From the NCBI RefSeq assembly GCF_000737315.1, contig NZ_JMCB01000032.1:1-64000 (forward strand): a DNA stretch of 64,000 nt, given 5' to 3'. The notes beneath the pieces were generated by a model. It worked only from the letters and a program-made list of their open reading frames with translations, did not search any database and was not told the DNA's origin. Positions 21,243-33,553 of this stretch are shown one piece after another. This DNA comes from Hyalangium minutum (lineage in GTDB: Bacteria > Myxococcota > Myxococcia > Myxococcales > Myxococcaceae). Numbering within the stretch: the stretch's first letter is position 1; each line of letters opens with the position of its first letter. Position numbers and translations under genes: made by a program.

Positions 21243-23036
21243 TCAGCGCTGCTTCCGCAACTCCACGTCGAACTGGGCCGGAGCGTTGCCGGGGAAGGTG
21301 CTCTTCCACGGCTTGTAGCCCTTCAGGGTCAGCTCGACGGTGATCTCCTCGCCGGGCGGGTAGTTGTTGTCCATGAGCAAGGGCGTGGTGCCCTTGTCTT
21401 CTCCACCCAGCACCACCCGGGCGCCGCTGGGCTCGCTGTTGATGACCAGCGGCGGAGGCTTCGAGGGCTCGGACAGGGCACCGCGCATCGCGCGCTCGGC
21501 GCTCGGCAGCAGGCGCTGGACATGAGGCCAGGCGAAGAAACCGCCCGCTCCGAGTCCTGCCACCACGGCGAGGCGCAGCGCCCACCGGCCCCAGGGCCTG
21601 CTCGGCTTGTGCTCCCAGAACGTCTCCTCGCGGGCCTCGCGCGTCTCGAGCTCGAGCCTCTCCGCCGGGGTCTCCAGCACGCTGGGAGAGGCCAGGAGCG
21701 GCGCGTTTCCGGGCATCGTCAACTCCGAGGCGCAGGCATCGCACGGCGCGTAGGCGGAGGGCAGGGGCGAGCCGCAGCGCACGCAGCGGAAATCCGTCGG
21801 CGGTGCGGCAGGCGCCTCGGCGGGAGCCTGGGGCGGGGGCATGGTCTTCAGGGACGGCTGCGAGGGAGACTTGAGCAGGGTTGGGGCGAGCCCCGGGGTG
21901 GGAGTGCGGGGGACGGGCCCCGGAATGGGGGCGGGGGACACGAGCCGGCCGCTGCTGCTCAGCTCCGAGCTGCCGGCAGGCAGGGCCCACTCGGAGGTGG
22001 GCTCGGGCACCCGGCGTCCTGTCTCAGGTGCGGGCGGACTTGGAGGAGGGGAAGGGGGAGCCGCGACAGCTTGCGGCGCAGCGGCCGGGGCGCGAGCGGG
22101 CTCGGAGGCCTTGGCCGCCTGGGCTTGCTCGAGGAGGGTGAGCGGCAGGTTCTGCTGCGCGAGGAAGGCGGCCAGCGTGTGAGAGGAGCCGGGCTCACCG
22201 GCTCGCGCCAGGTAGCGTCCGAGCGCTTCCGCCATGGCCTCGGGCTGAGGAAAACGAGCCTCGGGGGCCTTCTCGAGCGAGCGCATCACCACCTCGGCCA
22301 GCGGCGCCGGCACCTCCGTGAGCGGAGGCGGAGTGCCACTGGCGATGGCCATGGCGACGATGATGGCCTCGGTCGAGGTGCTGAAGGGGTGCTGGCCGGC
22401 GAGCAGCTCGTAGAGGACGATGCCGAGGGAGAACTGATCGCTGGCGGCGGTGGCGGCGCCCCCGGTAATCACCTCGGGCGCGGCATAGGAGGGCTTGCCC
22501 TTGAAGACACCGGGCTGGGTGCCGTGGGAGACGCCCTCCAGCTTGGCGATGCCGAAGTCGGTGAGCTTCACCTCGCCCTCGCGCGAGATGAGGATGTTGG
22601 ACGGGGAGATGTCGCGGTGGGCCGTGAGCACCGGACGCCCGTTGTGCGTGCGCCGGTAGGCGTGGCTGAGCCCCGCGAGCGCCTGAGCGCCAATGAAGGC
22701 CACGAGGTGTGGCGGGAGGCGGGCGTTGCGCCGCTTCAGGTGGCGGACGAGCACTCCCAGGTCCCACCCGTTGACCAGCTCCATGACGAGGAACAGGCCG
22801 GTGGCGTCATTGCCCACGTCATAGACGCTGACGAGGTTCTGGTGCTGCAGGTGGGTGGCGAGCCGGGCCTCGGCGACGAACATGCTCGCGACGGCCTCGT
22901 CCTTGGCGAGGTACGGGAGGATGCGCTTGATGGCCACGGGCTTCTCGAAGCCCTCGGCGCCGCGGGCGATGCCCAGGAAGAGCTCGGCCATGCCTCCCGA
23001 GGCCAGAGGCCGCACGAGCCGGTAACGTTCGTTCAC
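21243..23036 (-). CDS. Membrane Ser/Thr protein kinase with C-terminal PEGA domain
   Basis: LASGGMAELF, VAIKRI, HRDISPSN, DFG, APE; CVRC..CDAC segment; TM LAVVAGLGAGGFFAW; PEGA INSEPSGARVVL...GTTP. Confidence 0.92.
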   Translation of the reverse strand: MNERYRLVRPLASGGMAELFLGIARGAEGFEKPVAIKRILPYLAKDEAVASMFVAEARLATHLQHQNLVSVYDVGNDATGLFLVMELVNGWDLGVLVRHLKRRNARLPPHLVAFIGAQALAGLSHAYRRTHNGRPVLTAHRDISPSNILISREGEVKLTDFGIAKLEGVSHGTQPGVFKGKPSYAAPEVITGGAATAASDQFSLGIVLYELLAGQHPFSTSTEAIIVAMAIASGTPPPLTEVPAPLAEVVMRSLEKAPEARFPQPEAMAEALGRYLARAGEPGSSHTLAAFLAQQNLPLTLLEQAQAAKASEPARAPAAAPQAVAAPPSPPPSPPAPETGRRVPEPTSEWALPAGSSELSSSGRLVSPAPIPGPVPRTPTPGLAPTLLKSPSQPSLKTMPPPQAPAEAPAAPPTDFRCVRCGSPLPSAYAPCDACASELTMPGNAPLLASPSVLETPAERLELETREAREETFWEHKPSRPWGRWALRLAVVAGLGAGGFFAWPHVQRLLPSAERAMRGALSEPSKPPPLVINSEPSGARVVLGGEDKGTTPLLMDNNYPPGEEITVELTLKGYKPWKSTFPGNAPAQFDVELRKQR

Positions 23037-23054: not shown

Positions 23055-23393
23055 TCAGCCCTGGGGCTGGGTGATCTCCCGCAGAAGGGGCCACGGGTAG
23101 ATGCCGGTGCCGTGCCCATCGGTGAAGGTGAGGGTGAGCGCGTAGTTGCCCACCGGCTGCAGGGCCTGGATGCGGATGTCTGCGGGGACGCGGGCCGGAT
23201 CCAGCGTGCGGCGGTTGGTCCACTCATCCACGCAGGCGGCGCAGGGGCACTGCTGGCGCAGCACCTGGGCGCTGGCGGAGGTGCGCGCCCCGTCCTCCCA
23301 CGTGAGGCTCAGCGCCGAGGCATCCGGCGCGAGCTGGACGTCCGTGGCGGAGACGGGCTTGGGGGCGGGCTTGATGCGATCCCAGAAGCTCAA
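23055..23393 (-). CDS. DUF971 / gamma-butyrobetaine hydroxylase N-terminal-like protein
   Basis: LRQQCPCAAC, PVGNYALTLTFTDGHGTGIYPW. Confidence 0.88.
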   Translation of the reverse strand: MSFWDRIKPAPKPVSATDVQLAPDASALSLTWEDGARTSASAQVLRQQCPCAACVDEWTNRRTLDPARVPADIRIQALQPVGNYALTLTFTDGHGTGIYPWPLLREITQPQG

Positions 23394-23469: not shown

Positions 23470-25176
23470 TCACGAGGCCAGCTTGACCGGCTGGCGGTGG
23501 CCCTCCAGGCGGACGCCCTTCTTCTGGAGCACGGCGCGCAGTGCCGCCACGACTTGAGGATCCAACTGGGCGCCGGTGAGCTTGTCGAGGATCTGCATGG
23601 CCTGCTCCAGTGGCATGGCCTTCTGGTAGGGACGCGTGGAGGTGCACGCGTCGAAGGTGTCCGCGCAGGCGACGATGCGGGCCAGCATGGGGATCTCCTC
23701 GCCCTTGAGCTTGTCCGGGTAGCCGGTGCCATCCCAGCGCTCGTGGTGGCTGCGCACGCAGGAGCGCACCCCGGCGAGGAAAGTCACCGGGGCGATGATG
23801 GAGTCACCAATGGCCGGGTGCTCGCGCATGATGGCCATCTCCGCATCCGTCAGCCGGGACTGCTTGCAGAGGATGGACTCGACGATGCCGATCTTGCCGA
23901 TGTCGTGGAGGATGCCGCCGTACTGGAGCGTCTTGAGCTGGCGCTCGGGGAGGTTCAGCTCCTTGCCGATCTCCACCGCCACATCGCCCACGCGCTGGCT
24001 GTGGCCGCGGGTGTAGGCGTCCTTCGAGTCGATGGAGTTGGCCAGCGCGACGATCGTCTCCAGGTAGCCTTGCTCGAGGCTCTCGTAGAGGCGGCGGTTC
24101 TCCATGTCGTAGGCCATGAGCTGCTTGCTCATGTAATTGAACGTCTGGGCCAGCTCGCCCAGCTCGTTCTTCTGGCGGATGTGCACCTCGGCGCCGAACT
24201 GGCCGTTGGCCAGCTCCATGGCCTGGGCGGTGAAGTTCTTCAGCGGGCGGGTGAGGTTGCGCGAGAAGGTAGCCGCCAGCACGCATGCCACGAGGATGGC
24301 GGCGCCCAGACCCAGGAGGATGCGCTGCTCCATGGCTTCGACTTGGCGGTAGGCCTGCACCACGGGCTGCTCGGAGACGATGCCCCAGTTCACGCCCGGC
24401 ATGTGCGTATAGGCAGCGACGACGGCCTCCTTGCCCGTGCCAAAGTTGCCCACGTGGAAGTGCTCGATGTCCGGGCTCTGGGACTGGGCGATCTGCTGGA
24501 GCAGGTGGGCCACCGGGCCCCGGTGGGAGACGTTCGTCTCACCATTGAGAGCGGTGCCTCCCGCCACGACGTGGCCGTGCTGGTCCGCCACGTAGAAGAA
24601 GCCGCTGGAGCCCAGCCGCTCTTTCTGGATGAGCTTCTGGATGGCCGTGAGCGAGAAGTCCACGGCGATGTAGCCCTTCACCGGATCGCCCAGAGGGAAG
24701 GCCATGGTCAGCACCGGCAGTCCCTGTGGACCCTGGTGCGCCACCTCCGAGTAGCGCACGTCGGTGAGGCCCTCGATCAGCGAAAGCGCGCGGGCTTCGT
24801 GCTCGGCCACGGCGGTGGGCGGAATGTCGTTCACCGCGAAGGCCTGCAGGCCCGGCAGCCGCTCCTTCTGCGGAGAGAAGACGGTGATGGCCAGCACCTC
24901 GCGGCGCTGGATCAGCACGGAGGCCAGCAGGGCGCGCTGCTCCACCTCCGTGCGCGAGAAGAAGGCGGTGTTGGCCAGGGCCAGCACGGGCTGGGTGGGC
25001 TCGGACAGGAGCTCTCCCAGCTTGAGGCGCAGCTGCTTCACGTGCTCCTGCGCCAGCTCCTGGGCATCACGCACCAGCAGCTCACGGGTGTGGGAGACGG
25101 ACAGCCAGCCCACCATCACCGTGGGGATGATGCTCGCGACCAACATCAGCAGGAGGATGGCTTTGAAGAGGCGCAC
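23470..25176 (-). CDS. pmxA: Cache-HAMP-HD-GYP cyclic-dinucleotide phosphodiesterase (PmxA-like)
   Basis: Two TM helices, periplasmic Cache-like region, HAMP (LTRPLKNF...NELGELAQTFN), DAYTRGHSQRV, LHDIGK, HHERWDGTGYP, RPYQ. The symbol rests on recalled architecture and synteny with M. xanthus pmxA. Confidence 0.8.
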   Translation of the reverse strand: MRLFKAILLLMLVASIIPTVMVGWLSVSHTRELLVRDAQELAQEHVKQLRLKLGELLSEPTQPVLALANTAFFSRTEVEQRALLASVLIQRREVLAITVFSPQKERLPGLQAFAVNDIPPTAVAEHEARALSLIEGLTDVRYSEVAHQGPQGLPVLTMAFPLGDPVKGYIAVDFSLTAIQKLIQKERLGSSGFFYVADQHGHVVAGGTALNGETNVSHRGPVAHLLQQIAQSQSPDIEHFHVGNFGTGKEAVVAAYTHMPGVNWGIVSEQPVVQAYRQVEAMEQRILLGLGAAILVACVLAATFSRNLTRPLKNFTAQAMELANGQFGAEVHIRQKNELGELAQTFNYMSKQLMAYDMENRRLYESLEQGYLETIVALANSIDSKDAYTRGHSQRVGDVAVEIGKELNLPERQLKTLQYGGILHDIGKIGIVESILCKQSRLTDAEMAIMREHPAIGDSIIAPVTFLAGVRSCVRSHHERWDGTGYPDKLKGEEIPMLARIVACADTFDACTSTRPYQKAMPLEQAMQILDKLTGAQLDPQVVAALRAVLQKKGVRLEGHRQPVKLAS

Positions 25177-25194
25177 GGTTGGTCATTCCCCGGA

Positions 25195-26097
25195 CTACTT
25201 CCAGTCGGTCTTCCCTACCTGGAGCGCCACCTTGTCCTCGACGATCTCGAAGAGCCGCTCCGTGGAGGCACTCGACTTCTGGATGTCGCTCAGTGCGCGC
25301 ACCGTCCATCGATAACGGCCGGCAGGCAGCGGCGGCAACTTCCACTGCGCGGTAGGGACGGTGCTGCGCACAGGCTCCCCATTCGCGGGAAACACTTCCA
25401 CCTCATAGGACTTGGCGCCCGCCACCGCGTTCCACGCCAGCGTCACCGGCCCCAGGCCGGACTGGCCCTTGACGGGGGGGAACTTGAAGCGGAACCCATC
25501 CGTGGGTGTGCGGGGCTGCGGCGCCACGAGGACTGCCTCGGGGACCGGAGGGGCCTGTCCCTTGGCGATGCGCACCACCTCGCCCGGGTTCACCGGCTGG
25601 GTTTTGTCCTCGGCACGCACGCGTACTGGCGGGCCCGTCTGCACGGAGACGGTGGTGGCGCCGCTCTCCTCTACCTTCACGCTGAAGGTGGACGGCTGGC
25701 CCGCGCCCGGAGAGAGCAGGGCCCATGCGCTGTCCGCCGTCTTCGCCGCGGACACGTAGTCGGCGGCCTGGAAGTGCGTCTCGGCCTCCTGCAGCTTGGC
25801 GGAGGCCTCCTCGCGCCGGGCGGCGTTGCGATCCGCCTGGGCCACCGCCGTGCGGGCCGCGGCCAGCGCGCTCAGGGCGCGGTTGCGATCCTCCGCGGGA
25901 GGCAGCTTCAGGGTGGTGCCCGCGGGCACGGTATCGGACGTGAGCCCATTGAGCGCTCGCAGCTCACTGGCGCCCTTGGGGTCTCCGAGCGCGCGTGCGG
26001 CGACCTGGCTCAGGGTCTCGCGCTCGTTCACCACGACCTCGCGCTCCGGAGGAGGCGTGGCCGCGAGCCAGACAAGGAGGAGGAGGGCGTTGCTCAT
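25195..26097 (-). CDS. Exported LysM-domain protein with FecR-C-like strands and C-terminal FN3-like domain
   Basis: Signal MSNALLLLVWLAA; LysM ETLSQVAARALGD..ELRALNGL..VPAGTTLKLP; FN3-like VTLAWNAVAGAKSYEVEV...YRWTVRA. Confidence 0.82.
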   Translation of the reverse strand: MSNALLLLVWLAATPPPEREVVVNERETLSQVAARALGDPKGASELRALNGLTSDTVPAGTTLKLPPAEDRNRALSALAAARTAVAQADRNAARREEASAKLQEAETHFQAADYVSAAKTADSAWALLSPGAGQPSTFSVKVEESGATTVSVQTGPPVRVRAEDKTQPVNPGEVVRIAKGQAPPVPEAVLVAPQPRTPTDGFRFKFPPVKGQSGLGPVTLAWNAVAGAKSYEVEVFPANGEPVRSTVPTAQWKLPPLPAGRYRWTVRALSDIQKSSASTERLFEIVEDKVALQVGKTDWK

Positions 26098-26579
26098 CGG
26101 AACACGATCTCCCTTCCGGCCTGGACGGTGGCAGCGGGCGTGGACACGGACAGAGACTGGGTGGCCGGTGTCTCGAGCGCCGCGTCCACCTGCCCCTTGA
26201 TGACCGTGAGGTCCGTCCGCTCCTGGCCGGGCCGGAGCCGCGTCTCGGAGATGGCGATCAGCGCGTCCTCGCCCAGGTTCACCATGCCTCCATTGGGGAA
26301 GATGACGCGAGCGCTCGCGCCCGCGGCGGTGCGTACCTTGTCATTCTCGAAGAGAGGCAGCGACTCCTTGGCGGCGAGCCACTCGTCCCCGGTGGCGCGC
26401 TTGAGCTTCACATCGCCGTGCACCTCTTTGAGGTGGGCGCGAGGCTCTGGCTGTCGCGTGGGCGCGGGGGGAGAGGGAGGCGCAGACGGCTTCTCATCGG
26501 CGGAGCAGCCGATGGGGAGAGCCGGGAGCGCAAGGGCAAGGAGCATGGAGGGCCAGCGTCCGTTCACAAGCAGTTTCAA
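26094..26579 (-). CDS. Lipoprotein with N-terminal half of a FecR domain (start may be 26546)
   Basis: Lipobox-like LPIGC; LFENDKVRTAAGASARVIFPNGGMVNLGEDALI...STPAATV; stop overlaps the LysM gene start (ATGA). Confidence 0.8.
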   Translation of the reverse strand: MKLLVNGRWPSMLLALALPALPIGCSADEKPSAPPSPPAPTRQPEPRAHLKEVHGDVKLKRATGDEWLAAKESLPLFENDKVRTAAGASARVIFPNGGMVNLGEDALIAISETRLRPGQERTDLTVIKGQVDAALETPATQSLSVSTPAATVQAGREIVFR

Positions 26580-26639: not shown

Positions 26640-27443
26640 CTAGTCCAGACGCCGGTGTTGGAGACAGGGCAGGTTGCGTCGGATCCGTGCCAAGAGTTCC
26701 GGATCCACAGGAGCGACCGCCAGGCCCTCGCCTTCCGAGGCCCGCGCCGTCACCAGCCCCCACGGATCCACCACCATCGCGTGCCCATAAGTGATGCGCT
26801 TGTCGGAGTGGCGCCCACCTTGAGCGGGGGCGAAGACGTAGCACTGGTTCTCGATGGCGCGGGCGCGCAGGAGCACCTCCCAGTGGTCCTTGCCCGTCAT
26901 CAACGTGAAAGCCGCGGGCACCGCCAGCAATGTCGCCCCCTCCTTGGAGTGGCGGCGGTACAGCTCGGGGAAGCGCAAGTCGTAGCAGACGGAGAGCCCC
27001 AGCCTGCCCACCTCCGTCTGTGCGGACACCACTTCCGTGCCCGGCGCCACCGCTGCGGACTCCTGGTAGGTCGCACCATCACCTACATCCACATCGAACA
27101 GGTGCATCTTCCGGTAGACAGCCAGGCGCTCGCCCTGTGGCCCGAAGAGGACACTGGTGTTGTAGAGGCGGCCGCCAGGGGCTCCGGCCTCCAGGATGGA
27201 GCCGGCCAGGAGGGTGACGCGCAGCTCGCGCGCCAACTGGGCCATGCGGGAGAGCGTGGGCCCGTCCAGCGTCTCGGCGGCGCTGGGGCGATCAGCTTCG
27301 GAGCCCATCCAGGAGAAGTTCTCGGGGAGACCGACGAGGCGGGCTCCCAACCCGGCAGCCTGCCGGACGAGCCGGGTGGCGGCCTCCAGGTTGTAGGCCT
27401 TATCGGCGGTGGACACCATCTGAGCGGCGGCGATCAGGTGCAT
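26640..27443 (-). CDS. Carbon-nitrogen hydrolase (Nit1-like, deaminated glutathione amidase family)
   Basis: LPENF (Glu), YRKMHLFDV (Lys), SVCYDLRFPELYR (Cys), HWEVLLRARAIENQ. Start at ATG 27443, not the 28490 given in the ORF track. Confidence 0.92.
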   Translation of the reverse strand: MHLIAAAQMVSTADKAYNLEAATRLVRQAAGLGARLVGLPENFSWMGSEADRPSAAETLDGPTLSRMAQLARELRVTLLAGSILEAGAPGGRLYNTSVLFGPQGERLAVYRKMHLFDVDVGDGATYQESAAVAPGTEVVSAQTEVGRLGLSVCYDLRFPELYRRHSKEGATLLAVPAAFTLMTGKDHWEVLLRARAIENQCYVFAPAQGGRHSDKRITYGHAMVVDPWGLVTARASEGEGLAVAPVDPELLARIRRNLPCLQHRRLD

Positions 27444-27600
27444 GGGGGCGTTATAACGCGCTGTTAGGTACTCGGAACCCTTGGGAATCATTGTCCTTGG
27501 GCGCTCTGTTCTAACCCCTGGAGCGGGTGCGTCTTCCTTTACACCTCGTCTGGCCGTGTGGTAGGGGACCCGCCCGACATTTTTCGAAGGCAGTTCCTCG

Positions 27601-27635
27601 AAAAGTGGGCCGCCGTGCCCGCTTTTCTTATTTTT
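27601..27635 (+). terminator. Leader terminator hairpin upstream of rimP (rimP-leader type)
   Basis: AAAAGTGGGC-CGCCGT-GCCCGCTTTT followed by CTTATTTTT, 21 nt before the rimP ATG; GGGC/GCCC core. Confidence 0.75.
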
Positions 27636-27656
27636 GGAGCAAAGGTTTCGATTCGT

Positions 27657-28142
27657 ATGGCGGAGAGCAACTTCAAGCAGACGGTGGAGGAGAAGGCGAT
27701 GAGCCTGCTCGATCCCATCGTTGCGGGCGAAGCGCTTGAGCTCGTCGACCTCGAGTTCGTCCGCGAACGCGAGGGGTGGGTTCTCCGTCTCTTCATCGAC
27801 AAGCCGGGTGGCCGGGTGGGCCTGGACGAGTGCAGCCAGGTCTCTCGCGCGGTGGATCCGGCGCTGGACGTGGAGGACTTCATTCCCCACGAGTACAACC
27901 TCGAGGTCTCCAGCCCTGGGGTCAACCGGCCGTTGAAGAAGCTGGCTCACTACGAGCGGGTGAAGGGGCAGAAGGTCAAGGTGAAGACCTACGGCCCCAT
28001 TGGCGACCCGCCCCGCAAGAACTTCTCTGGCACGCTCACCGAGGTGTCGGGAGAGGAGATTGCGGTCGAGGTGGAGGGGGCGGGCAGCTTCCGCATCCCC
28101 TTCAAGGACATCGCCAAAGCCAACCTGGAGTTCGAGTTCTAG
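27657..28142 (+). CDS. rimP: Ribosome maturation factor RimP
   Basis: LELVDLEF, LRLFIDKPGG, LDECSQVSR, YNLEVSSPGVNRPL, IAKANL. Confidence 0.96.
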   Translation: MAESNFKQTVEEKAMSLLDPIVAGEALELVDLEFVREREGWVLRLFIDKPGGRVGLDECSQVSRAVDPALDVEDFIPHEYNLEVSSPGVNRPLKKLAHYERVKGQKVKVKTYGPIGDPPRKNFSGTLTEVSGEEIAVEVEGAGSFRIPFKDIAKANLEFEF

Positions 28143-28209
28143 TCGTCGACATACAGGGCCCAACCTTTGAGGGGCGGGCCCGTGGACCCTTTCGGAGAAG
28201 ACCCAGACC

Positions 28210-29907
<1,698 letters not shown>

Positions 29908-30233: not shown

Positions 30234-30334
30234 GGGGTGGGAGGGGGGGTCGGGTGTTAAGGACCACTCGCGGACAATTCTAGATTAGGGTGCTGCGCCC
30301 TCGGGAGTCGGCGGAGCAGAAGGCCAAGCAACGT

Positions 30335-33300
30335 ATGTCGAAGAAGCGCGTTCACGAAATCGCAAAAGAGCTCAAGGGCCACGGCATTGAGCTCGACAAC
30401 AAAGAGGTCGTTACCGAGCTGGCGGCGCTCGGCTACGACGTCAAGAGCCACTCGTCTTCGCTTGATGACGATCAGGCCAATGCTGCGGTCCAGAAGATCC
30501 TGGAGAAGCGCAAGCCGAAGCAGGCCGCGCCGCCGGTGACGGCCAAGGGCTTCGTGGTGCGCCGCAAGGTGGGCGTGCCCTCGGGCGTGTCCTCCGACGG
30601 CCAGGAAGGCCAGCAGGCCCACGAGGCCCCCGCTGCGCCTCACGTGCCCGAGGCGGCTCCTACCGCCGAGGCTCCTCGTGCAGCCGCTCAGCCGGAGGAG
30701 ACTTCGGTCGAGGCGCCCAAGGCACCGGCTCAGCCCGAGCCTGGCGCTGCTGCTGCCGAGGCGCCCAGGGCACCGGCTCAGCCCGAGCCTGGCGCTGCTG
30801 CTGCCGAGGCGCCCAGAGCACCGGCTCAGCCCGAGCCTGGCGCTGCTGCTGCCGCCACCGAGGCGCCCAGAGCACCGGCTCAGCCCGAGCCTGCCGCCGC
30901 TGCCGCCACCGAGGCGCCCCGTGCGGCCCAGCCCACTCCCGCCGCCGAGGCCCCCAAGGCTCCCGCTCAGCCCGAGCCGCCGGCCGCCCCTCAGGCCGCC
31001 CAGACTCCCGCGGCCCCGCCGCAGCGCTTCCCCACGCAGGAGAGGTCCCCTTTGCCCTCCACTCCGCCGCGCAATCCGGTGCCGCCGCAGATCCGGACGC
31101 AGGCCACTGTTATCTCCCGTCCGCCTCCGGGTGGACAGGGTGGCCGTCCGGGTGGACAGGGTGGCCGTCCCGGTGGCCAGGGTGGCTACAGCGGCCGTCC
31201 GGGTGGTCCCGGCGGCCAAGGTGGTCGTCCCGGTGGACAGGGTGGCTACAGCGGCCGTCCGGGGGGTCCCGGCGGCCACGGTGGCCGTCCGGGGGGGCCA
31301 GGCCAGGGACCGGTGCGTCCCACCACGCCCACTGGCGGGGGGCCCACGGCAGGGGCTCAGGCCTCGGCTCAGCCGGGTCAGAACGTGACCATGGTCGGTG
31401 GCGTGCCTCACGCCTCGACGCCTCAGGAGCAGCGGCAGCTGCGTCCCACGGCCACACAGGCCGTCGTCATCTCGCGCCCGCTCATCCAGGTCCGCCGCGT
31501 CACGCCGACCGCCGGCCAGCAGAAGCAGTACCCGATGGCGCCGGGCAAGAAGGCCATCGGCGAGGTGCGTGAGTTCAAGGTCGTCCCGGATCACGCGGGC
31601 CGTGGCCGCGAGCTCGTCGACGTCTCCAAGAACAAGGACAAGGCGCCGCGCAAGAGGGGCGGGCCCAACGACACCTCCGTCTCCAAGCAGGAGCTGTCGG
31701 ACCTCGTCTGGGGCCGCGTCAACATCCCCATCCGTGGCAAGAAGAAGAAGCCCACGAAGAAGGGCGCCAAGACGCAGATCACCCAGATGGCCGAGGAGAA
31801 GAAGGTCATCAAGCTCCAGGAGGGCATCAGCGTGTCCGACCTGGGCCAGCGCATGGGTATCCGCACCGCGGAGCTCATCAAGAAGCTGATGGCCGCGGGG
31901 AAGATGGCCACCGCCAACCAGATGATCGACGCCGACACGGCGGAGCTCATCGCCACCGACTACGGCTGGAAGGTGGACCGGGTCGGCTTCGAGGTGGAGG
32001 ACTACCTGCCCGAGACTGTGGCCAAGCCCGAGGACGAGCGCACCCGTCCGCCGGTGGTCACCGTCATGGGCCACGTCGACCACGGTAAGACGAGCCTGCT
32101 GGACGCCATCCGCGCCGCCAACGTGGCCTCGGGTGAGGCCGGCGGCATCACGCAGCACATCGGCGCGTACAGCGTCACCACGGCGCGCGGGGACATCACG
32201 TTCCTCGACACGCCGGGCCACGAGGCCTTCACGTCCATGCGCGCCCGTGGCGCCAACGTGACGGACGTGGTCATCCTGGTGGTGGCTGCCGACGACGGCG
32301 TGATGCCTCAGACGATCGAGGCCATCAAGCACGCCAAGGCCGCCGAGGTGCCCATCGTCGTTGCCATCAACAAGATGGACGTGCCGGGCGCCAACCCGGA
32401 CCGCGTGAAGAAGGACCTCGCCAACCACGAGCTGGTGCCCGAGGAGTGGGGCGGCGACACCATCATGGTGCCCGTCTCCGCCAAGCAGAAGATGGGCCTG
32501 GACCTCCTCCTGGAGAACGTCGTCCTCCAGGCCGAGGTGCTCGAGCTGACGTCCAACCCGGCCCGTCCGGCCGTGGGTGCCATCATCGAGGCCAAGCTGG
32601 ATCGCGGCCGTGGCCCCGTGGCCACCGTGCTGGTGCAGGAGGGCACGCTGCGGCTGGGCGATGCCATCGTCACTGGCACCCACTACGGCCGCGTGCGCGC
32701 CATGAATAACAGCCGTGGCGAGCAGGTGAAGGAAGTGCTCCCCGGCTACTGCGCCGAGGTGATTGGCCTGTCCGGCGTGCCCACCGCGGGTGACACCATC
32801 AACGTGGTGGCGGACGAGAAGTCGGCCAAGCAGATCGCCGAGCACCGCGCCATGAAGGAGCGTGCGATCGATCTGGCCAAGGTCAGCCGCGAGACGCTGG
32901 AGCAGCTGTTCGCCAAGACGAAGGCGGGCGGCGGTCCCAAGGAACTGCGCGTCGTCATCAAGGCGGACGTGCAGGGCTCGGCCGAGGCCGTCAAGCAGGC
33001 CGTCACCAAGCTGACCGGTCCCAAGGTCCGCGTGGAGATTATCGACACGGGCGTGGGCGCCATCACCGAGTCGGACGTGATGCGCGCGGCCGCCTCCAAG
33101 GGGCTCGTGGTGGGCTTCAACGTGAAGCCGGAGTCTGGCGCGGAGTCCGCGGCCAAGGCTCAGGAAGTCACGCTGCAGTCCTACAGCATCATCTACGAGC
33201 TCATCGACGGCATCCGCACGGAGATGGAGAACCTGCTGGAGCCCATCCGCACCGAGCGCAAGCTGGGCCGTGCGGAGGTCCGCAACACCTTCAACGTGCC

Positions 33301-33553
33301 GAAGCTGGGCACCATCGCCGGTGCGGCGGTGCTGGACGGTGTCATCAAGCGTGGCTCGTTCGTGCGCCTCATGCGCGAGAACAAGCAGCTCTTCGCCGGC
33401 AAGATGGCGTCGCTCCGCCGCTTCAAGGACGACGTCAAGGAAGTGGCTCAGGGCTTCGAGTGCGGTATCGGCATCGAGAACTACAACGACCTCAAGCCCG
33501 GCGACATCATCGAGGCTTACGAGATCGAGGAGACTCGCCAGAGCCTGACGTAA
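30335..33553 (+). CDS. infB: Translation initiation factor IF-2
   Basis: [55 protein letters not shown]. Start at ATG 30335. Confidence 0.98.
30710..31300 (+). repeat. Coding tandem repeats in the IF2 N-terminus: 48-54 bp [16 protein letters not shown] units, then GGRPGGQ units
   Basis: Units start at 30710, 30758, 30806, 30860 and 30911; GGRPGG repeats span about 31130-31300. Confidence 0.85.

Follow-up and report, generated by a model that had tools for sequence, protein, structure and literature searches.

Can a FecR-type sensor domain be divided between two genes at the point where FecR proteins cleave themselves, and could the resulting pair control a cyclic-dinucleotide phosphodiesterase? 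The question is raised by three genes, here termed A, B and C, in the 64,000-nucleotide stretch of Hyalangium minutum DNA that we analysed (the window). An initial annotation, made from the sequence alone, had proposed that A and B each carry one half of a FecR domain, and that the two proteins could reassemble, bridge a lipid anchor and peptidoglycan, and signal to the protein encoded by C. Its statements at the sequence level all hold, and its interpretation is partly supported: the FecR mapping, the conserved breakpoint and the linkage of the genes stand, while reassembly, bridging and signalling are putative.

The three-gene locus and its proteins

All three genes lie on the minus strand. 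Gene A (26094..26546) encodes a small lipoprotein, the putative orthologue of MXAN_2063, of 150 aa from an ATG at 26546; its mechanical open reading frame is longer (26094-26579, 161 aa, reaching a TTG at 26579), and relatives of 148-156 aa begin at MLLALAL, which places the start at that ATG. Residue numbers of A given here follow the 161-aa frame. Gene B (25195..26097) encodes a secreted 300-aa protein, the putative orthologue of MXAN_2062. The stop codon of A is shared with the start codon of B in an ATGA overlap (26094..26097, minus strand), as first noticed, suggesting translational coupling. Gene C (23470..25176) begins 18 bp past the stop of B and encodes the expected Cache-HAMP-HD-GYP protein (568 aa), which is identified as a PmxA orthologue of dCache-HAMP-HD-GYP architecture from Pfam matches, motif positions, hydrophobic segments and the literature (PMC4877007; bioRxiv 10.1101/600031). 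It comprises TM1 (residues 1-28), a periplasmic dCache domain (~29-280), TM2 (281-308), HAMP and HD-GYP, and its motifs HD424, GYP485 and R515-x-x-Q518 occupy positions identical to those published for PmxA, including the R515xxQ518 cGAMP signature (PMC4877007; 10.1101/600031). With a 4-bp overlap between A and B and 18 bp between B and C, the co-directional genes have the layout of an operon (gaps of at most 50 bp). They are neighboured on one side by a CN-hydrolase and rimP-nusA-infB, and on the other PmxA is followed by a DUF971 protein and a Ser/Thr kinase. Neither an ECF sigma factor gene nor one for a TonB-dependent transducer adjoins A-B-C, and none was found in the neighbourhood of a relative of 35% identity (L006).

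The locus matches MXAN_2063-MXAN_2062-pmxA of Myxococcus xanthus in the order of its genes, in their domains and sizes, and in its surroundings. From this synteny, and from the 47-50% identity of B to its counterparts in other Myxococcus species, we infer that A and B are orthologous to MXAN_2063 and MXAN_2062. The M. xanthus genes are co-transcribed, and the operon and its domain content have been published with the remark 'function not known' (PMC8844925), MXAN_2063 being described as a FecR-domain lipoprotein and MXAN_2062 as a LysM and FN3 protein (PMC8844925; PMC4877007; 10.1101/600031). As a phosphodiesterase PmxA is selective for cGAMP, and it has a phenotype under osmotic stress (10.1101/600031). 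The initial annotation knew of no description of such a split; the operon is in the literature (PMC8844925), but the FecR-derived segment in MXAN_2062 and the idea of a split domain are absent from the operon papers and are new relative to them (PMC8844925; PMC4877007; 10.1101/600031).

Protein A has a lipoprotein signal peptide only, with a lipobox Cys25 that is invariant in relatives. No match to the DUF4880 anti-sigma domain was found in A by a scan that finds DUF4880 in E. coli FecR. The lipidated Cys is followed by a Pro/Ala-rich stretch, read from the sequence as a tether (residues 26-46; 26442..26504, minus strand), and here the mean pLDDT climbs from ~51 (residues 21-30) to 72 (residues 31-40). 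A beta-domain (residues 47-154; 26118..26441, minus strand) contains the putative pre-cleavage FecR half at 82/83-154, and AlphaFold2 (AF2) models it with block-mean pLDDT values of 88-97 (41-90), 86-89 (91-110) and 56-73 (111-150). The protein closes on the strand GREIVFR (residues 155-161; 26097..26117, minus strand), which corresponds to FecR G181-TEFTVR: across 23 sequences A154, G155, R156, I158 and F160 never vary and E157 and V159 hardly do, and the C-terminus reads [RK][EK]I[VE]F[QR]* in 42/42 loci. In the AF2 model of A alone this tail (150-161) is predicted to be disordered, with a pLDDT below 50.

Protein B consists, in order, of a signal peptide, LysM, a three-helix module, the putative post-cleavage half of FecR, FN3 and a conserved C-terminal strand. 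The initial annotation had placed its FecR-like strands between LysM and FN3-like domains, and this is the arrangement that we found. The LysM domain (residues 22-66; 25900..26034, minus strand) scores 23.9 bits in Pfam against a cutoff of 20.9 and is matched in 28/48 B-family members; it is absent from B of Corallococcus and from many distant relatives, and on this sequence distribution LysM is dispensable and binding to peptidoglycan lies outside the core features of B. The three-helix module (residues 68-128; 25714..25896, minus strand; AF2 helices 68-87, 92-110 and 114-128, block-mean pLDDT 87-96) is kept across the family. It is followed by a five-strand segment (residues 135-180; 25558..25695, minus strand), including the stretch originally quoted (25558-25689, residues 137-180), for which AF2 places strands within 137-177 at a block-mean pLDDT of 85-91 when B is modelled alone. 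The fibronectin type III-like domain (residues 195-287; 25237..25515, minus strand) is called from AF2 and Foldseek, with matches to FN3 structures at probability 1.0 and Pfam fn3 in 13/48 relatives. FecR_C, the STN-like domain PF16344 shown by E. coli FecR, was not matched in B, which has FN3 there instead. The C-terminal strand (residues 288-300; 25198..25236, minus strand) carries the motif L-x-L-x-V ... W-K/Q and is of low confidence in the B-alone model (mean pLDDT 56 for 291-300).

Complementary FecR matches and conservation of the break

The Pfam FecR model (PF04773) matches A at residues 80-154 (35.9 bits, cutoff 24, E 1e-8) over model positions 1-73 of 97 only, and A ends 7 residues later. 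E. coli FecR is covered by the model from residue 110 to residue 202, and G181/T182 lie close to position 73-75 of the model. When profiles were compared by hhalign with an alignment of 20 canonical FecR sequences, A 83-154 aligned to E. coli FecR 112-179 (score 30.7, P 3e-4; 6e-5 in another run) and B 135-180 to E. coli FecR 181-227 (score 37.6-39.2, P 5e-5 to 5e-6), and an in-house hhalign tool gave both matches again. These ranges put the break at the G181|T182 self-cleavage site. On the profile map, A and B are therefore adjacent and complementary parts of FecR, pre-cleavage and post-cleavage, as had been claimed. A whole FecR domain was not found on one polypeptide; the remainder after A maps to B 135-180 in 42/42 loci. 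An in-silico chimera of A and B, built from 19 same-genome pairs, aligned to FecR continuously over 111-114 columns with a score of 52.6-57.5 (P 4e-8 to 6e-9, probability 95-96%), above either part, and chimeras built with the GT-strand copy of A or of B scored about equally. A comparison of the A family with the B family by hhalign found nothing, so the B segment is not a copy of the A segment.

It is very unlikely that B 135-180 resembles the post-cleavage strands of FecR only because two beta-rich segments happen to look alike. HMMER gave no Pfam FecR match in B of the window or in 48 relatives (E <= 10, among the 25 families listed), so that it is profile-profile comparison, at a probability of 64-86%, and not HMMER that suggests the link, which is what a chance similarity might produce. 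The real score of 37.6, however, stands against maxima of 17.4 in column shuffles (n=60; 12.1 +/- 1.9 for B, 12.6 +/- 2.9 for A) and 22.0 in block shuffles (n=60), giving z-scores (column, block) of ~13 and ~9 for B and ~6 and ~5 for A. The match is also specific to one half of FecR: the pre-GT half was matched by A (31.6) and not by B (16.9), and the post-GT half by B (38.5, P 5e-6) and weakly by A (20.3). Moreover, the FecR match of B opens two columns after that of A closes. The shuffle controls and the half-specific cross-test led us to reject chance as the explanation for B.

At the junction itself the initial annotation was only partly accurate. It had A stopping where FecR proteins carry the Gly-Thr site, and the break is indeed at the autocleavage position on the map, but A has Gly-Arg there and continues for one strand: G155-R156 aligns to FecR G181-T182, and the following REIVFR resembles FecR TEFTVR. 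Since A also carries the post-break strand, one strand of the FecR map is covered by both proteins. The Gly-Arg of A is invariant except for Ser-Lys in the most distant relative, which speaks against N-O acyl-shift chemistry. The Gly-Thr dipeptide is likewise missing from B, where the aligned position is S136, followed by a variable residue at 137 and not preceded by Gly.

The suggestion that orthologues be checked for the same breakpoint is answered by 42 related loci from independent genomes and metagenomes, in all of which the stop of A overlaps the start of B (ATGA in 41, GTGA in 1) and B opens with a signal peptide. Non-complementary halves and fused relatives had both been named as grounds for giving up the idea, and we tested for both and encountered neither: a search of 1.84 billion representatives yielded no fused A-B relative among the B-family matches listed, and the full-length matches listed carry no N-terminal extension. 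A and B are both under clear purifying selection. It is thus extremely improbable that the split is an artefact, i.e. a frameshift, sequencing error or recent pseudogenisation of a single FecR-domain gene, a reading in whose favour we find nothing beyond the 4-bp overlap of two frames; the frameshift or pseudogene explanation is ruled out by the invariant overlap together with the missing fused form among the matches listed. The unit as a whole is similarly stable. Of the GTDB species loci that are long enough to include A, B and C, nearly all contain the complete trio; M. stipitatus and nearly all of the 39 species loci share the layout, and a relative of 35% identity has retained the unit amid different surrounding genes. 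Intergenic gaps are 2-21 bp in four relatives with called genes. Against the reading favoured below, co-variation was limited to a single clade-level event.

Readings of the A/B pair and a proposed mechanism

We lean, though only slightly, towards the reading that A and B form one FecR-type periplasmic domain split at the gene level, whose halves associate and whose association is read by PmxA. The two proteins could instead be FecR-derived but independent, a self-sufficient beta-domain lipoprotein and an autonomous module that share no fold and may contact PmxA or other envelope components separately. We consider this unlikely, although several observations agree with it. The five-strand segment of B may be autonomous because AF2 folds it confidently without A, the first 60-70 structured residues of A match the stand-alone anchoring domain 5IX9, and the one-strand overlap on the FecR map is not that of a cleanly divided domain. 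Nor was a FecR structure retrieved for A: PDB sequence searches with A, B and the family profiles gave weak matches to 5IX9 and 4Z29 (A) and to LysM and FN3 structures (B), Foldseek retrieved 5IX9 alone with the A model and FN3 domains alone with the B model, and the FecR-type structures 6OVK and 4M0N were recovered neither by Foldseek on the A model nor by A sequence profiles. Against independence, canonical FecR consists of two chains at the breakpoint and nowhere else (PMC12036975), all 42 loci have the stop/start coupling, the conserved C-terminal strand of A is disordered when modelled alone, and the chimera outscores either part in one continuous alignment.

Less probable still is a split-FecR pair with a job unrelated to PmxA, for example a structural or sensing role in the envelope or peptidoglycan, with the operon link reflecting co-transcription only. 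In M. xanthus, pmxA is also served by internal, MrpC-dependent promoters, which lie in the 3' part of MXAN_2062; it is upregulated separately from the two genes ahead of it, and its expression and theirs diverge during development (PMC8844925), which would fit separate functions. With internal promoters and independent upregulation of pmxA, stoichiometric co-function of A/B with PmxA is not guaranteed. MrpC-type sites follow the palindromic consensus GTGTC-N8-GACAC; no match to it was found in the B coding region, and window-wide counts were below chance. On the other side stand the very small gaps between the genes and the persistence of the trio in nearly every sufficiently long locus, including that of the 35%-identity relative elsewhere in genome context.

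In the favoured reading of a split domain read by PmxA, the halves would bind each other and control the enzyme. A would be the pre-cleavage half, with a Pro-rich tether and lipid anchor replacing the transmembrane helix, and B the post-cleavage half, with FN3 in place of the C-terminal STN-like domain of FecR. The halves would be exported separately by Sec and then associate non-covalently in the periplasm, like self-cleaved FecR fragments, and the invariant C-terminal strand of A probably helps to zip them together. The pair may be sensitive to the state of the envelope or to osmotic conditions, and the periplasmic dCache of PmxA would sense association or dissociation, thereby tuning the hydrolysis of cGAMP (perhaps c-di-GMP); the FN3 domain and the conserved C-terminal strand of B are candidate contact surfaces. 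Such a system would operate without a sigma factor, an anti-sigma domain, a TonB-dependent transducer or self-cleavage chemistry. A more specific version, which we offer tentatively and consider possible rather than probable, is that A/B is a 'pre-cleaved' FecR module needing neither proteolysis nor a sigma factor, in which a lipid-anchored N-half and a wall-binding C-half reversibly report envelope or osmotic state to the PmxA dCache and so set cGAMP.

Among bacterial phosphodiesterases, PmxA was the first for which a preference for 3',3'-cGAMP was shown, and it is important for development and osmotic-stress behaviour in Myxococcus. Viewing MXAN_2063 and MXAN_2062 as FecR sensor halves supplies a concrete hypothesis for its control, namely a heterodimer that signals by associating or dissociating. 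A lineage with FecR split at the self-cleavage site lends support to the recent view that FecR rests as a complex of two fragments and signals when they separate, and the split genes offer a system in which FecR halves can be expressed and manipulated separately. Should the pre-cleaved module be real, it would argue, on independent evolutionary grounds, that FecR signalling depends on the two-chain state and not on the cleavage chemistry.

Comparison with known systems

By weak sequence match and by fold, A ~45-115 resembles the retention or anchoring module of RTX adhesins (MpIBP RIN 5IX9, LapA) and the MtxA N-terminal domain 4Z29, the fold match to anchoring-type domains having a TM-score of 0.73 (normalised to target) and an rmsd of 1.4 A over 63 columns; the likeness to 5IX9 spans A ~45-110. 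Unlike A/B, those domains are single-chain parts of giant adhesins or a magnetotaxis protein, with no split and no cyclic-dinucleotide partner. The proposed regulatory logic of A-B-C would parallel that of YfiBNR (TpbB) in Pseudomonas and E. coli, where a lipoprotein and a periplasmic protein, encoded in one three-gene unit with their target, control a membrane-bound cyclic-dinucleotide enzyme that has a periplasmic sensor domain, according to the state of the envelope. The output is a diguanylate cyclase in YfiBNR, whereas it would be a phosphodiesterase in A-B-C, and no YfiR, YfiB or OmpA-like match was found in A or B with Pfam and NCBIfam, so the likeness is functional only.

FecR domains outside sigma/anti-sigma pairs are already known as such. 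With the self-cleaving sigma regulators of the FecR family (E. coli FecR, P. aeruginosa FoxR and P. capeferrum PupR, PDB 6OVK), A/B has in common the juxtamembrane periplasmic domain PF04773. FecR works as two chains meeting at G|T; what its N-fragment has in the periplasm corresponds to A, and the beginning of its C-fragment corresponds to B 135-180. The self-cleaved fragments of FecR remain associated until their dissociation gives the signal (PMC12036975). The division is genetic in A/B, with Gly-Arg at the break, and autoproteolytic in FecR, with Gly-Thr. A and B each carry a separate Sec signal peptide, while Tat exports the FecR fragments together; A would be held by a lipid, in contrast to the anti-sigma domain and transmembrane helix of FecR; and B ends in FN3 where FecR has its FecR_C/STN-like domain. 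The gene partner, finally, is an ECF sigma factor with a TonB-dependent transducer for FecR and an HD-GYP phosphodiesterase for A/B.

Organization of the locus and its neighbourhood

The window has the base composition of high-GC myxobacterial DNA and, according to the ORF list, carries three co-directional minus-strand genes across the region of interest: gene A, a small lipoprotein orthologous to MXAN_2063 (26094-26579 as a mechanical ORF of 161 aa, the numbering used here), gene B, a secreted LysM/FN3 protein orthologous to MXAN_2062 (25195-26097, 300 aa), and gene C, the PmxA orthologue (23470-25176, 568 aa). Relatives and the sequence collection's gene call place the start of A at ATG 26546, for a product of 150 aa. 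The TGA stop of A overlaps the ATG of B in a shared ATGA, and C starts 18 bp past the stop of B. Pfam matches residues 80-154 of A to FecR (PF04773, model positions 1-73 of 97, E 1e-8), identifies LysM (residues 22-66) as the sole significant match in B, and assigns a dCache_1-HAMP-HD_5 (HD-GYP) architecture to C. In A, the invariant lipobox cysteine (Cys25) is followed by a Pro-rich tether. These features confirm at the gene level the split FecR locus described in the initial annotation, in which the segment of B quoted as FecR-like (25558-25689) corresponds to residues 137-180.

No GTGTC-N8-GACAC-type site, which we take to be the MrpC-type consensus, was found at two or fewer mismatches in the 3' part of B (25177-25500). 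In M. xanthus, internal MrpC-dependent pmxA promoters sit inside MXAN_2062 (PMC8844925), and MXAN_2063, MXAN_2062 and pmxA are co-transcribed according to RT-PCR (Kuzmich et al. 2022, PMC8844925). The same study describes MXAN_2063 as a FecR-domain lipoprotein and MXAN_2062 as having a signal peptide, LysM and FN3, with the functions of both given as not known. Gene C has HD at 424, GYP at 485 and R515-x-x-Q518, the positions reported for the catalytic and cGAMP-specificity motifs of PmxA (PMC4877007; bioRxiv 10.1101/600031). A and B have their closest relatives in Hyalangium (76-89% identity). A full-text literature search found MXAN_2063/2062 named nowhere beyond PMC8844925 and its preprint, and the split-FecR reading is absent from both and from the FecR literature examined; the operon is already known, and this reading of it appears to be the new part.

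Downstream of pmxA, two minus-strand genes (21243-23036 and 23055-23393) encode a Ser/Thr kinase and a DUF971/GBBH-like_N protein (112 aa). Both are syntenic in M. stipitatus, where their counterparts carry Pkinase+PEGA and GBBH-like_N Pfam domains; in the distant locus L006 their place is taken by an OmpA-domain protein and a PEGA protein. The 616-aa minus-strand ORF at 26640-28490 is over-extended, as is typical for high-GC DNA; judging from its relatives, it probably contains the true gene, encoding a CN-hydrolase of about 267 aa, at the 3' end (about 26640-27443), and the rest mostly overlaps rimP on the opposite strand. The plus-strand gene infB (30290-33553) has tandem repeats in the IF2 N-terminal region (30709-30934 and 31126-31302), comprising a 48-nt unit repeated about 4 times and Gly-rich 21/30/60-nt units (GGRPGGQ...).

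Two complementary halves of FecR

Because PF04773 covers residues 110-202 of E. coli FecR, the G181|T182 self-cleavage site falls near model position 73-75, which is where the FecR match of A, and nearly A itself, stops. A canonical FecR periplasmic-domain alignment of 20 sequences (E. coli FecR, PupR (6OVK), the Bacteroides anti-sigma factor 4M0N and 17 homologues) was compared using hhalign with the families of A (23 sequences) and B (48 sequences, down to 35% identity). FecR 112-179 aligned with A 83-154 (score 30.7, P 3e-4) and FecR 181-227 with B 135-180 (score 37.6, P 5e-5; GTEFTV...VNAGESLQF against PSTFSV...VNPGEVVRI), so that the two matches abut on FecR, and both mappings were recovered by an in-house hhalign tool. 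As the initial annotation had proposed, the two products correspond to adjacent complementary halves: the half preceding the cleavage site matched A (score 31.6, P 6e-5) with B at background (16.9), and the half following it matched B (38.5, P 5e-6) with A weak (20.3). Column shuffles of the FecR alignment (n=60) scored far lower with the B family (12.1 +/- 1.9, max 17.4) and with the A family (12.6 +/- 2.9), as did seven-column block shuffles (15.7 +/- 2.4, max 22.0, and 15.8 +/- 2.8, max 26.7, respectively). In-silico chimeras joining A 45-154 to B 134/135-190 from 19 same-genome pairs gave a single unbroken alignment with FecR of 111-114 columns (score 52.6-57.5, P 4e-8 to 6e-9, probability 95-96%). 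Together, the matches, shuffle controls and chimeras indicate that the homology map is right and well above chance. HMMER found no FecR match in B or any of its 48 relatives, as expected for a fragment of only about 24 model positions, and the assignment of B therefore draws on profile-profile evidence.

The initial annotation had A stopping at the Gly-Thr site. The break does lie at the aligned site, but A has G155-R156 opposite FecR G181-T182 and continues for one strand past the Gly (REIVFR, similar to FecR TEFTVR). All sequences of the A family carry Gly-Arg and the most distant relative Ser-Lys, and the lack of a Thr, Ser or Cys nucleophile at the Gly-Arg position makes self-cleavage chemistry impossible. 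In B, the first strand (TFSVKV) aligns with the FecR strand that REIVFR also matches, and a chimera with A's copy scored about equally (51.9), indicating that the halves overlap by one strand; either copy could fill the canonical position, sequence favouring neither.

Conservation of the breakpoint

Comparison of 42 loci with the end of A present, drawn from GTDB species representatives of Myxococcaceae/Archangiaceae and metagenome contigs, showed the same breakpoint throughout. In all 42, A terminates with [RK][EK]I[VE]F[QR]-stop, its stop overlaps the start of B (ATGA in 41, GTGA in 1) and B begins with a signal peptide. Protein lengths are 148-156 aa for A-like and about 250-320 aa for B-like members in every case. 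An exhaustive profile search of 1.84 billion representatives recovered many full-length B relatives; among the matches listed, all start to match no more than about 35 residues from the N-terminus, with no FecR extension ahead of it and hence no fused single gene. An artefactual split, as by frameshift or sequencing error, is ruled out by these overlaps, signal peptides and the lack of a fused form among the matches listed, and at the sequence level the split and its conserved breakpoint are established. A dCache-HAMP-HD-GYP gene comes next in nearly all loci of sufficient length, including that of the most distant B relative (L006, 35% identity), in a wholly different neighbourhood. LysM is missing in Corallococcus and many shorter B relatives, leaving a helical module, the FecR-like strands, FN3 and the C-terminal strand as the conserved core of B.

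Loci L017 and L030-L043 differ from the rest in that AGRKIEFQ at the end of A (Corallococcus, Citreicoccus) is invariably found with PPVTVEA / V.VQQG and the C-tail LELNVKVKDGWQK in B; other lineages pair AGREIVFQ with PVRVEA / V.VEKG / LKLEVQKGQWQ. The AGRKIEFQ clade lacks LysM except in Citreicoccus. This co-variation is a single clade-level event, an anecdotal and sole hint of co-evolution.

Predicted structures and a proposed mechanism

Modelled alone, A has block-mean pLDDT of 88-97 over residues 41-90, 86-89 to residue 110 and 56-73 over 111-150, falling below 50 in the invariant tail (150-161). This unplaced strand fits a partner-dependent element. B is predicted confidently overall (mean pLDDT 87.8), and so are its five strands at 137-177 (block-mean 85-91), modelled without A; the models equally allow this segment to be an autonomous module. 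Only its last 10 residues are poorly predicted, though conserved: the motif L-x-L-x-V ... W-K/Q at 288-300 (25198-25236) is kept family-wide to 35% identity but left unplaced by AF2 in the monomer (mean pLDDT 56), and may serve a partner, for instance A or the PmxA dCache domain, as a beta-augmentation strand. Foldseek matched the B model to FN3 domains, while for the A model its sole match was the MpIBP cell-surface anchoring domain 5IX9. Residues about 47-104 of A (26270-26441) resemble this retention domain (TM-score 0.73 normalised to target, rmsd 1.4 A over 63 columns), and the N-terminal part has weak matches to the LapA retention module, DUF7354 and the MtxA N-terminus, suggesting that FecR-type domains and adhesin retention modules are linked.

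E. coli FecR self-cleaves at G181|T182 into fragments that remain associated, the C-fragment shielding the N-fragment and force-driven dissociation being the signalling step (PMC12036975). The osmotic-stress phenotype of a pmxA deletion mutant (10.1101/600031) is compatible with envelope-state input. By analogy with FecR, we propose that A and B would be exported separately and, once in the periplasm, form a non-covalent pair resembling FecR, A being held at a membrane by its lipid and B, in most lineages, at peptidoglycan by LysM. The periplasmic dCache domain of PmxA, whose gene is the only further invariant member of the A-B unit, could then read the association state of A and B, or the FN3 and C-terminal strand of B, and thereby modulate cGAMP hydrolysis. 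Pfam/NCBIfam scans of A and B indicate that the unit is not homologous to YfiBNR, which is its functional analogue.
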